Shown piece by piece: positions 25,617 to 60,300 of a DNA stretch of 64,000 nucleotides (positions within the stretch are counted from its first letter, which is position 1; each line of letters opens with the position of its first letter). The notes beneath the pieces were generated by a model. The model searched no databases and was not told the DNA's origin. It saw only the letters and a program-made list of their open reading frames with translations. The position numbers and the translations under genes were made by a program. The DNA comes from Chlorokybus atmophyticus (lineage: Eukaryota > Plantae > Mesostigma and Chlorokybus algae): positions 534,098 through 598,097 of the forward strand of contig RHPI01002568.1 in the NCBI GenBank assembly GCA_009103225.1, read 5' to 3'.

Positions 25617-26612
25617 AAAAATGAGTGGGAGTGGTAGATGTGGAGCACAGTGTAAGTGCGCGTGTGTGTATGTCTGTCATGTGTAGATGTTTGTAGGTGT
25701 AGAGGCGCATTTGCCGGTTTTGGCGTGCTAGTTTGCGGAGGTTGTTTGTTTGTGTGTAGATGTGCTCGCGTTAGTTGGAGAGTAGCAGAAACGAAAGTAG
25801 GGTTATGCCTGAATTGTATTGCTTACCAGTTTGCTGCCGTTGTCACATATGTTGTGCACGTGTCGTGATGTGTTTGTGTTGTGCCGCTTCCTCCTCCACT
25901 CGCTTGCCTAGCTATCAATGCACTGGTCAACTCATGCGCTTTGCAGCTGTTTGCTTAGCCAAGTCAATCCTGCAGGTGTTAACCATGCCCATTGCATGAG
26001 TCATACGTTTGAGCTGACCAACCAGTCTGAGCGTAGTACAGCATGGTACACACGCACAATGTTCGGTTGTCTCTGCTGATCTCTTGATCTTTTAGCACAC
26101 GGTCACACAGTTTTGAAAGGTATGTGGCGAAACTACTAAGGAATGCACCCACCACGACTTGAACATGGATAATTATTGGCAGTACAGCATAGGGTATACA
26201 AAGGAACAATTACATCTGATCTGCTACCCAATTCAACTTCTATTGGTCAGATAGCTATAAAAGGCTGGTACTTTGACACTGCTCAATTCTTCAAGATATT
26301 ATTGGATTCGGAAACTCCAAAAGCGGATTCTGTGCAGCTGCTGCCAGTGGCATAACAGTACTCCCAAGCCTCGGTAATTGCAAACTCCTGTGCACAGCTG
26401 TGAAGTTTGTCATCTCCGAGGTCTGCACGATGAGCAACAGGATAGGTCCCATCAGTGTGTGTGCACAACTGAATTCAGCCCTGAACCATACTGGAAATAA
26501 GCTCTCCACCTGGCCAAGAGGGGGCATGGTGGAACATGAACAACACTGGCATGCGGTTTGTACCACACCCTGTGCCGAAGACCATCGTCTGCAACTTGAA
26601 GCCCAGGCGAGG

Positions 26613-27819
26613 ATGCAGCTAGGCGGGGGTAACCTCCTTGCTGTTGTTGTGGTAATTGCGGGTGTCCTTGGCAATACTAGGCCCGCTACTGCCTGCGTCC
26701 CTATCTTCAATGCCAGCTTCTGTCCTGTAAGAGTGTACCAGTGGTTCGCGCAGAGTGCACTTGTGGAAAATCATCAGTCTCGAACTGAATAACACCACTC
26801 TGGTAACGAATGCAGGTGCTAAACGGGCTTGAGATGTGGTGGTAAGTGATGAGTCTCAACAGCTAGCTTTGTATGCGCGTGACAATGCGCATGCTTTGGT
26901 TGGTGTCAGGCAGCCAAAGGATGTGGAGCGCACGGCAAGGCAGCGCTGCATTGACATTGTTGCCAATTGCCATGCGGTTGGTGCTAGCTATCACGCCTAT
27001 CCAATGCATATTGCTCGGTGTTACTGTGTTATACATGTAAGTTGTATAACTCATCTGGGTATTATGCTTGGACACAGCTGGACATGTTCACTGGCAAAGA
27101 GCAGAAGTGCTTCACCTCAATCACCATGGAGGAGTGCGCCTACTTCATGGTAAGAGCGATTGCCCCAAACTGCGCACACGTACAATCATGATGCAAACAC
27201 CTTTGCCTGTGCAGTGCTACATGACTGCCCAGGAGGCCATTGGCCCGTGCGAGGCCGGATGGAACTATGTTGATGCGTTCTTTCCTGCACCACCCTGCAG
27301 GCAATCATGACTACACACACAATTGATGACTTCCGCATGTGCCATCACATGCAAGTTATCCTGCAACTTCTTATGCACAACAGGAGCCTCTGCCAGAAAA
27401 TGGAAAGGTGCAAACAGAAACTGGTGGACCCCAAAACTAAACAGAAGAAGGCAGATCCTGTGGACATATGCAACGCCTTTCCCGAATGCACTCAACAGGT
27501 ATGTCCTGTCCTGTGTATGTCTTACTTCGCGGGCTCAGTTGGTTGGGTCAGATTCTGGGTCAGGACTGCGTGTAATGCCATCATCAATGGAACAGCAACA
27601 CCACTGAAAGGCAACGTGTACCTTCAGTGCCTTCTGTATGCTCTCACCAACGCTCTTTGCGCTTACGCTTGACAGGATTGCACCAATGTTTGCTTTCAGT
27701 GCTCCGACTGCCGCTGGTGCCGTAATGCAGCAACCACCGTGCATGCAGCAAGCAGCCGTCTGTTTGCTGTACTGGCGACCGCATTGATACTGGCCTTGCT
27801 TGCTGTTGGTATAGCATAA
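26613..27819 (+). CDS. 207-aa secreted, probably GPI-anchored cysteine-rich protein with a Frizzled-CRD-like pattern
   Basis: Seven exons: 26613..26726, 26816..26841, 26910..26976, 27078..27149, 27215..27300, 27384..27498, 27676..27819; all phases join. Signal peptide, 18 Cys including CVPIFNASFCP, CAYFMC, PPCRSLCQKMERC, DICNAFP, then a hydrophobic C-tail. Confidence 0.8.
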
Positions 27820-28128
27820 GAGCAGTGTACTCAAGCATGTGCAGTGTATAACGGGACATGCAGGTTGCATTGTTCTCTCAGAAGTGTGTACTGACTTGCA
27901 CAAAACCATGCACCAAAGTTGTCAAGGCAACATACATTCTCATCATGACCAAAACAGCAGTAGAAGTAGCACACAAGCCCCGCTTGTTCTCCATGAAGCA
28001 TCTCATTACAAAGAAACTAGAAACTATTATAGCCTGAACTAACACCGTTAGCATTATGGTGTTAGGTTACAAGCACTAGACATACTATATATACTTACTG
28101 TATGGCTGCTATCCCACCTTATCATATG

Positions 28129-28828
28129 TCAGCTCTCCTCCTCTCCATAGGCAAGGTGTCTGCCAGTGGCACAGCCCACCACATCCTCACTGGTAGCCCC
28201 ACAGCAGTCCCAAAACCGCCGCAGACCCTTCTCGCCCATCCCGGCCTCGATCCCCAAATACTTTGTTGCCTCACCACCCGTAAACAGCTCAGTGTGATAC
28301 CTGAAAGTGAGAGTATTTGGAAAACACAAGGTTAGCTCTTAAAACAACGACTGCATACTTGCCAGTCCCATGCTGCACAGCTTTGAGCGTAAACATTGGT
28401 GCGCACACGTCAAGTGCAAACACAAGCCTACCATTCCAACCGCTCACGAGAGGCAAACAAGTAAAGTTCATGAAACACTTGGGTGGCGTGAGTTACAGTG
28501 AAGCAAAACAGGCCAGGGCATGCGCATGACATGAAGCCAATCAGAATAGCGATACTGTCATCTCTCACCTGCAAGCTTGCGGGCCGTTGGTTTGGGAGTT
28601 GTATTGCTGACGACACCGCCGGCACGTGCAAAGGGAAGCAGCATCAACAGTGGAAGTTGAAGACTCTCTGCTGCTAAGGCTGGCAGAAGCACTGTCGCTA
28701 GTCAAAGCGCAGCATGCTGCTCGCCTTGCGAGGGCATGCGAGGGCTGTCTGACGTGCTGTTGTTCATCTAACCTCAGCCTTGTGCGGTGAGAGCTTAAGG
28801 GAAGCTGCCGTATTGCAAATCCAGCCAT
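28129..28828 (-). CDS. Small plastid-targeted Cys/His zinc-binding protein (Btk/CHORD-like motif)
   Basis: Exons 28828..28569 and 28300..28129. Ser/Arg-rich transit peptide, then CRRCRQQYNSQTNGPQACR|YHTELFTG..FWDCCGA....GCATGRH. Confidence 0.7.
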
Positions 28829-57722: not shown

Positions 57723-58073
57723 NGCACCAGAATCAACCTGCTGAAAAGGCGTTGCCGTTGCCGCCGCCGCGCAGCAGTACGGTCCTGCCAATACCTGTCA
57801 CTGCTGCGCAGCTCCGTTTATTATACGGCGCTGGCGGCCTCACAACTTCTCAAACAGCCGCCATCGTGCCGTTGCAACGGGCCGCGGGGTCACTGCGGTG
57901 CGCTGCAGCCCAGCGCCGAAGCAAGCGGCGGGGCGTATTGTAAACATTAGCCTGCATTGACTTCTTACATCTGGATATTGCGTCGCGCAGGTGCAAAACA
58001 GCCGCAACGCGGGGGGGCGGGCAGTTTTTTGCCCGTGTACACACACAACTCTTAGCATGATATAGTAGGATAT

Positions 58074-58647
58074 TTCGGCTGTTGACCATGTTTGATGACG
58101 CAGTAACTATAGCGTGTAATCAATTAGCGTTACATGGTAGAGTGGATCAGTTACAATGAGGGTGAGTAGTGGCGGCATGTTTTTGGGGTATGGGGCCTGC
58201 CCCGACCTCGTACCGCCAAAAACGCGGCCGTTTCAACCACTAACTGTGCTGCAATTGCACCAAATCCCTAGCAATTTTTGGTCGCCGTTGGTAAGCAATT
58301 GCCGCTGAGATAGATTTCAGCATCTTTTGTGCATCTCTGCAATGATTGGCGACTTCGCTGCCTTTTTCAGCAACGGCTGTTATCACCGTTGCGATCCCAT
58401 TTGATCAAATTCATACATGATCAAATGGCGGCCTAACGATGCAATTTTTCGTTTAGTTGAATCTTAACGTTAAAGTAATTTAGGTTAGCATCATTTTGAT
58501 GGTTGTAACCTTGACTTTACTTACTGAGTATCTTAGCACGTACCGTGGCGTGAACGCTACGATGAACATTAAGTTTTGTAACATTTAATTCGGCTGTTGA
58601 CCATGTTTGATGACGCAATAACTATAGCGTGTAATCAATTAGCGTTA
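58074..58647. repeat. 59-bp direct repeat pair (58074..58132 and 58589..58647, 1 mismatch), 515 bp apart
   Basis: TTCGGCTGTTGACCATGTTTGATGACGCA(G/A)TAACTATAGCGTGTAATCAATTAGCGTTA; looser similarity continues for about 20 bp. Confidence 0.9.
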
Positions 58648-59101
58648 AAAGGTTGAGTGGATCACTTAGAATTGCAGGTTGCTAGCTATATTGCACCATG
58701 TTACACCATATTGCACCATATTGCACCATATGTGCTTCATATCGCAACATATGTGCTTCATATTGCAACACATCAGAGATTGTTTTGCCACCTTAAATAC
58801 GCGAGTTACATCTCAAATCATATCGGCCATATGCAGCAATATGCCGGCATGTGCAGCGTGCACATTGTGCTCATTATTGATATTTATTCGCATATATTTT
58901 GAGTTGAGCATGAAGTGGGGATGTGCTTTGGACGGTCGAGATCTGTATTCTACAGATCGAACAGGCAACAATTGATCAACGCCGCCTAGCCAATGCGGCA
59001 TGCGGGCCACGCAGCCCGGCAGTCGCGGGTGCCGCATGTGATGCCCTGGGGTGAGGTTTGTGTGTGCCCTAATGCCGGCTGCCCAATCAGCCGCACCGCT
59101 C

Positions 59102-59105
<4 letters not shown>

Positions 59106-59141
<36 letters not shown>

Positions 59142-60300
59142 NNNNNNNNNNNNNNNNNNNNNNNNNNNNNNNNNNNNNNNNNNNNNNNNNNNNNNNNNNN
59201 NNNNNNNNNNNNNNNNNNNNNNNNNNNNNNNNNNNNNNNNNNNNNNNNNNNNNNNNNNNNNNNNNNNNNNNNNNNNNNNNNNNNNNNNNNNNNNNNNNNN
59301 NNNNNNNNNNNNNNNNNNNNNNNNNNNNNNNNNNNNNNNNNNNNNNNNNNNNNNNNNNNNNNNNNNNNNNNNNNNNNNNNNNNNNNNNNNNNNNNNNNNN
59401 NNNNNNNNNNNNNNNNNNNNNNNNNNNNNNNNNNNNNNNNNNNNNNNNNNNNNNNNNNNNNNNNNNNNNNNNNNNNNNNNNNNNNNNNNNNNNNNNNNNN
59501 NNNNNNNNNNNNNNNNNNNNNNNNNNNNNNNNNNNNNNNNNNNNNNNNNNNNNNNNNNNNNNNNNNNNNNNNNNNNNNNNNNNNNNNNNNNNNNNNNNNN
59601 NNNNNNNNNNNNNNNNNNNNNNNNNNNNNNNNNNNNNNNNNNNNNNNNNNNNNNNNNNNNNNNNNNNNNNNNNNNNNNNNNNNNNNNNNNNNNNNNNNNN
59701 NNNNNNNNNNNNNNNNNNNNNNNNNNNNNNNNNNNNNNNNNNNNNNNNNNNNNNNNNNNNNNNNNNNNNNNNNNNNNNNNNNNNNNNNNNNNNNNNNNNN
59801 NNNNNNNNNNNNNNNNNNNNNNNNNNNNNNNNNNNNNNNNNNNNNNNNNNNNNNNNNNNNNNNNNNNNNNNNNNNNNNNNNNNNNNNNNNNNTATATATA
59901 TGTATATATGTATGTATATATATGTATATATATACATATATATGTATATATGTATGTATATATATACATATATATACATACATATATACATATATATACA
60001 TACATATATACATATATATACATGTATATATATACATATATATACATATATATACATATACATATACATATATATATATATGTATGTATATATATATGTG
60101 TACATGTATACATATACATATATACATGTACATATATATACATATATGTACATGTATGTATATGTGTACATGTATACATGCACACATATACATGTACATA
60201 TATATACATATATGTATATGTGTATGTACACACACACATGTATATGTGTAATTATGTCTGTGTACATGTATATATGTACCGATATGCATACCTATATATA
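59106..60300. repeat. (AT)n / (ATAC)n array spanning a ~750-N assembly gap
   Basis: AT run, N gap, then a degenerate TATATACA array. Confidence 0.9.

Follow-up and report, generated by a model that had tools for sequence, protein, structure and literature searches.

Does a locus of the alga Chlorokybus atmophyticus, at which the open reading frames appear only as fragments, encode a stand-alone surface protein built on a Frizzled-type cysteine-rich domain (CRD)? The locus lies in a 64,000-nt stretch of contig RHPI01002568.1 (assembly GCA_009103225.1), which was analyzed as a whole and is referred to below as the window. A sequence-only reading of this DNA had proposed that the fragments conceal a gene of 7 small exons, whose 207-aa splice product would be a Frizzled-CRD-like, probably GPI-anchored protein. 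The gene model behind this proposal could be reproduced in full: all of its elements were found in the DNA (Table 1), the ORF track indeed contains fragments only, and each exon translates as had been quoted. The exons, all on the + strand and spanning 26613-27819, total 624 nt, corresponding to 207 codons and the TAA stop.

The model is open over the whole 207 aa with six canonical-type introns, and two codons are split by introns, TG/G for W and AG/G for R (n=2). The reading frame closes only when the micro-exon E2 is included. The GC content is 0.54 in the exons versus 0.47 in the introns, with a GC3 of 0.62.

Table 1. Coordinates of the gene model, of the minus-strand RNA features and of neighbouring observations in the window; slashes mark exon-intron borders and C1 to C10 denote the cysteines aligned with the canonical ten.
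Feature	Position	Strand	Description
E1	26613-26726	+	Start codon ATG, signal peptide, then C1-V-P-I-F-N-A-S-F-C2-P, in which N-A-S is a glycosylation sequon; donor CCT/GTAAGA
Predicted signal peptide	26613-26693	+	Residues 1-27
E2	26816-26841	+	26-nt micro-exon; acceptor TGCAG/G; donor GTG/GTAAGT
E3	26910-26976	+	Acceptor GTCAG/G; R-C-I-D-I-V-A-N-C with two extra Cys; donor GCG/GTTGGT
E4	27078-27149	+	Acceptor CACAG/C; K-C3-(X8)-C4-A-Y-F-M; donor ATG/GTAAGA
E5	27215-27300	+	Acceptor GTGCAG/T; C5, one extra Cys, end F-F-P-A-P-P-C6 and two bases of the Arg codon; donor CAG/GCAATC (GC donor)
Intron 5	27301-27383	+	83 nt, GC-AG ends
E6	27384-27498	+	Acceptor AACAG/G; (R)-S-L-C7-(X5)-C8-(X19)-C9-N-A-F-P-E-C10; donor CAG/GTATGT
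Intron 6	27499-27675	+	177 nt, GT-AG ends
E7	27676-27819	+	Acceptor GACAG/G; terminates in TAA
E7, first part	27676-27723	+	Five-Cys module D-C-x3-C-x2-C-x2-C-x2-C-R
E7, second part	27724-27819	+	GPI-type signal, then TAA
Antisense intron	27566-27647	-	CT..AC ends (GT..AG on the minus strand); inside sense intron 6
Minus-strand intron	26423-26509	-	87 nt, CT..AC ends; contig 26300-26422 joined to 26510-26688, depth 33
Short ORF	28132-28329	-	In the highly expressed neighbouring unit
87-aa ORF	28568-28828	-	
AT-rich block	58001-60000		G+C 0.26

The predicted product carries sorting signals at both ends. In E1, a hydrophobic core of 12 residues (Kyte-Doolittle 3.34) is followed by P-A-T-A, a standard signal-peptidase site, with cleavage predicted after A-T-A and directly before the first Cys. 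In E7, the sequence R-N-A-A, with N-A-A as a candidate omega site, is followed by a 9-residue polar spacer and by 19 hydrophobic residues that run up to the stop; the best 12-aa Kyte-Doolittle window of this exon (2.93) lies at the extreme C-terminus, and zero residues follow the hydrophobic stretch. The signal peptide, the NAA site and the hydrophobic tail without a cytosolic part, all three of which had been called beforehand, were recovered, and together with the spacer these sequence features make up the complete layout of a GPI-anchored protein. Judging from them, the product is probably secreted and GPI-anchored.

What kind of domain lies between these signals was assessed against the published Frizzled pattern. 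The FZ-CRD is described by the spacing CnCnCX8CX6CnCX3CX6,7CnCnC, with disulfides C1-C5, C2-C4, C3-C8, C6-C10 and C7-C9 (PMC6938638, citing Pei & Grishin 2012), and the MEME consensus of the human Frizzled CRD (Table 6, motifs 9, 8 and 3) reads C-Q-P-I-x5-C; C-X8-C; and P-I-P-P-C-R-S-L-C-E-R-A-R-Q-G-C...C-D-K-F-P (PMC4978840). Compared with the at least ten ordered Cys of an FZ-CRD, the algal protein has 18 after the signal peptide, at model positions 28, 37, 60, 67, 80, 89, 94, 105, 121, 125, 131, 151, 157, 162, 166, 169, 172 and 175. Extra cysteines had been pointed out beforehand, and eight were found beyond the canonical ten, three inside the domain and five after it.

The motifs follow one another in the order C-V-P-I-x5-C (E1), C-X8-C-X4-C (E4/E5), P-A-P-P-C-R-S-L-C-Q-K-M-E-R-C (E5/E6) and C-N-A-F-P (E6), such that four Frizzled hallmarks, C-x-P-I...C, C-X8-C, P-P-C-R-S-L-C and C-x-x-F-P, are all present and correctly ordered. 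The P-P-C-R-S-L-C heptad, assembled across the RNA-confirmed E5/E6 joint, is identical to that of the human Frizzled consensus (PMC4978840), and 9 of the 16 columns around it are identical to the consensus when compared by eye. Furthermore, C-N-A-F-P matches C-D-K-F-P of the consensus, and C-V-P-I matches C-Q-P-I. The fixed gaps are divided, with two of the four as in Frizzled and two missed. The C3-C4 gap is X8 (Cys80-Cys89, both in E4) and the C6-C7 gap is X3, as in Frizzled, whereas the C4-C5 gap is X4 instead of X6 (Cys89-Cys94, across the E4/E5 joint, which is not RNA-confirmed) and the C7-C8 gap is X5 instead of X6-7 (Cys125-Cys131, both in E6). The C5-C6 gap amounts to 26 residues and contains one extra Cys. 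When 18 Cys were placed at random, the relaxed spacing core arose in 0.5% and the strict core in 0.09% of cases, the protein having the relaxed core only, and the naive joint chance of the four residue-level hallmark matches given the composition is ~2e-9; all these figures are post hoc, the comparison having been chosen after the sequence was viewed and the scan covering very many proteins.

Relatives were sought exon by exon, with pieces of 24-47 aa (for PDB, all six exons of at least 22 aa). Against Pfam at E<=10, these pieces matched 0 families, Fz and the folate-receptor family (PF03024) included, in a search of low power at 24-47 aa per piece. A phmmer search of PDB with the six exons at E<=10 gave no Fz match, again at low power, and the chance matches to a pyrophosphatase-like protein, a phage S74 domain, KcsA and a methionyl aminopeptidase were dismissed. 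In the comparison of ESM Atlas features, the top score for E6, against unnamed clusters of 56 aa, was 0.85, short of the useful range. The word search with stop-free ORFs containing E6 (67-212 aa) or E1 (72-227 aa) retrieved no public spliced protein, and an E6 phmmer search of 1.84 billion representatives retrieved no relative. The lone E6 match, to a 1270-aa tandem-repeat protein (P0001), was dismissed as a spurious repeat artefact. Moreover, scanning JGI metagenomes with the E6 ORF gave 134 pattern matches, 0 of which were confirmed, and tblastn of the exons within the window found no paralogue. The searched collections lack the product, or at a minimum E6. Note that, because the queries were only 24-47 residues long, blank searches of this kind are weak on remote homology.

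On balance, we lean towards a divergent Frizzled-type CRD, judged at the level of motifs. Of the Frizzled identity as first claimed, the motif order and the X8 and X3 gaps stood, the X4 and X5 gaps did not agree, and the exon-wise searches returned no Fz match; since two defining spacings depart from the pattern, we do not file the protein as a canonical FZ-CRD member. The same protein might instead be an orphan, a lineage-specific, GPI-anchored and Cys-rich protein of the surface or wall with no relationship to Frizzled CRDs, in which the heptad and the short matches arose by coincidence in Cys/Pro-rich sequence. We regard this origin as doubtful, although a good deal speaks for it: the exon-wise searches lack a family match, very large collections lack a relative, two of the four fixed gaps deviate from the Fz pattern, there are eight extra Cys, and a scan of very many proteins is expected to turn up rare coincidences. 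However, an unrelated orphan would have to carry four hallmark motifs in the correct order by accident, with a combined chance for spacing and residues that stays far under 1e-6 when generously corrected, and the exon-wise searches counted in its favour are nearly powerless for remote homology. Despite the post hoc nature of the figures and the many proteins scanned, coincidence is the less likely reading of the motif matches.

The divergent Frizzled-type CRD presupposes the splice joints from which it is assembled, and these were compared with the contigs of one RNA run (X1), aligned to 26300-28300; the stretch was present in one study. The run contains 0.41 of the sampled words (1451 bases queried), a fraction close to that of the exons. 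Runs X2 and X3, from transcriptomes of other Chlorokybus species, contain 5-8% of the words. In run X1, two of the six junctions are confirmed, E5/E6 across the GC-AG intron 5 and E6/E7 across the GT-AG intron 6, each by one contig whose shorter side measures 25-26 letters, a length for which the chance of an exact match within 2 kb is negligible. The first sense joint (27297>27381) has four ambiguous letters and was set at 27300/27384, because only the +3 register yields canonical-type ends (GC..AG, + strand); the second (27494>27672), cut at +4, falls at 27498/27676 with GT..AG ends. The confirmed E5/E6 joint builds P-P-C-R-S-L-C, the heptad that a differently spliced transcript had been feared to lose, and the five-Cys part of E7 is covered by the RNA contig 27672-27854. 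RNA-seq had been proposed as the check on the junctions, and it bore out these two, the GC donor among them; the E1/E2, E2/E3, E3/E4 and E4/E5 joints are covered by none of the run X1 contigs shown, and RNA support therefore does not reach the N-terminal half of the domain with C1-C5. The locus is confirmed as a real, expressed and spliced gene.

With the four upstream junctions uncovered, the 3' half (E5-E7) could be real and the 5' half mis-modelled, with other exons or another start and a product that is not a signal peptide-CRD-GPI protein. This is improbable in our estimation, and several observations nonetheless point that way. A depth-3 contig (26763-26955) passes E2 unspliced, the depth-33 spliced minus-strand contig lies over E1, and the E3 donor is the weakest splice site in the model, the other sites being near-consensus. 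A perfect GTAAGT donor at 27037, in phase with E4, would end E3 at 27036 and add 20 aa including two Cys (a C-Y-C pair). The intron then remaining, 27037-27077, would measure only 41 nt, shorter than all other introns of the gene (65-177 nt), and this GTAAGT is either an alternative E3 end or a decoy site. The C2-C3 gap would be 42 residues with the short E3 and 62 with the long one; in Frizzled-8, this gap is ~36 residues, so that, assuming homology, the short E3 donor is mildly favoured. The main conclusions are unaffected by the choice between the two donors (26977 or 27037). In addition, the frame stays open upstream of the modelled start and includes two further ATGs, one at 26526, in a favourable context with G at both -3 and +4, and one at 26430, which could extend the N-terminus if transcription begins further upstream. 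Against a wrong 5' half, every splice site except the E3 donor is close to consensus, the frame would not close without the 26-nt E2, E1 is a textbook signal peptide followed directly by C-x-P-I, E4 supplies the C-X8-C core in register, and a GPI signal needs an N-terminal signal peptide.

Minus-strand RNA was also observed at the locus. The contig with the antisense intron (27470-27565 joined to 27648-27701, minus strand, run X1) crosses the E6 donor and the E7 acceptor at a depth of 7, approximately that of the sense contigs, and the minus frame of this transcript reaches a stop 13 codons past the splice. The second minus-strand transcript lies head to head with the gene, and its upstream exon (26510-26688) covers the initial 76 nt of E1; the 87-nt intron of this transcript is a multiple of three in length and lies within a 139-codon minus ORF. 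Pfam searches with the minus-strand ORFs of the locus found no family. We infer that the minus-strand RNAs are non-coding antisense or read-through RNA, the read-through perhaps originating in the unit from 28113 onward, whose expression is strong (depth 304). That both strands yield a non-coding pair with the open frame untranslated, as spliced antisense RNA at a depth similar to that of the sense contigs might suggest, is highly improbable in the face of a 208-codon frame open across six introns, sorting signals that match at the two ends, an even number of Cys, a raised GC3 and an antisense frame that stops soon past the splice.

Three other features of the window were recorded (Table 1). 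The short ORF in the neighbouring unit has a sub-threshold match to the BTK zinc motif (E 2.5e-4, 21.3 bits versus a cutoff of 24), and the 87-aa ORF resembles a transit peptide with a C-x-C-x2-C motif downstream of it. The very AT-rich block, in which ORFs of 417-484 codons are simultaneously open on both strands, is typical of low-complexity or repeat DNA.

If the divergent Frizzled-type CRD is accepted, the expressed nuclear Chlorokybus gene would give rise to a 207-aa precursor consisting of a cleavable signal peptide, a Cys-rich CRD of ~130 aa, a five-Cys stalk and a GPI-attachment signal. The mature protein would most likely reside at the plasma membrane, on its outer face, or be shed into the wall. 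Its CRD would stand alone, without a signalling part of its own, and the helical groove typical of the fold would accommodate either a partner protein or a small ligand that is hydrophobic or lipid-modified; the protein would thereby act as a carrier or co-receptor. Lipid or sterol sensing or binding is suggested by analogy only, and the class of ligand and the role would likewise follow from analogy with known CRDs. In its most extended form, the proposal would be that of a stand-alone GPI-anchored Frizzled-type CRD in the earliest-branching streptophyte alga, unannotated and without relatives that exon-level comparison with ~15 billion proteins could reveal, which would bind a lipid or sterol at the cell surface and thereby preserve or illustrate a Wnt-independent, ancestral role of the Frizzled CRD fold as a ligand carrier in the green lineage; in this full extent we consider it unlikely.

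Should the fold prove true, the protein would represent a minimal lipid-anchored Frizzled-type CRD in an organism that lacks both Wnt and Hedgehog signalling and a convenient natural system for what the CRD fold binds outside animals, be it a lipid, a sterol or another small ligand, and the green-lineage record of the domain would gain a new architecture. Should the fold not be borne out, the locus would add one more orphan Cys-rich surface protein. As the locus also shows, genes with short exons and a GC-AG intron, overlapped by antisense RNA, can escape public protein sets.

Several families of Cys-rich proteins were weighed and set aside on sequence features: nsLTP/LTPG, as the protein has no C-C pair; X8/PDCB, as there is no W-C-V start; and CFEM, which is fungal and has a different pattern. 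One close likeness is to the FZ-CRD (Pfam Fz, PF01392) of Frizzled, sFRP, ROR, MuSK and others, in which a signal peptide is likewise followed directly by C-x-P-I...C, with the same C3-X8-C4 spacing, an identical P-P-C-R-S-L-C, C-x-x-F-P near the end and a domain of ~130 aa. The algal protein differs in the X4 spacing of C4-C5, the X5 spacing of C7-C8, the long C5-C6 loop and the extra Cys, and it is without a 7TM, NTR or kinase partner domain. Chlorokybus is not known to have Wnt.

The folate receptor and riboflavin-binding protein (HFN-type CRD, PF03024) share the layout of the algal protein, with a signal peptide, a single multi-disulfide helical CRD and a GPI anchor. Proteins of this type are of similar size (~210-260 aa) and bind a small ligand; the folate receptor has 16 Cys, and folate receptors carry Trp-rich and C-C motifs. 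The algal protein has neither motif, for which reason the folate-receptor type was set aside, and the motif matches that it does have are with the Fz type rather than the HFN type. RECK and glypicans combine a GPI anchor with a divergent Fz-like CRD at the cell surface, as the algal protein would, but they are large, multi-domain and animal-specific, whereas the algal protein is single-domain and 207 aa long.

GPI-anchored proteins with Fz-like or related CRDs are thus known from animals, in the form of RECK, glypicans and folate receptors. FZ-CRDs were reportedly also found in plants and chromalveolates by Pei and Grishin in 2012. Given such plant FZ-CRDs and the GPI-anchored CRD proteins of animals, a Fz-type CRD in Chlorokybus would not be a new kind of protein. 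What would be new, in a protein with no detectable relatives, is the 207-aa signal peptide-CRD-GPI architecture with its eight extra Cys.
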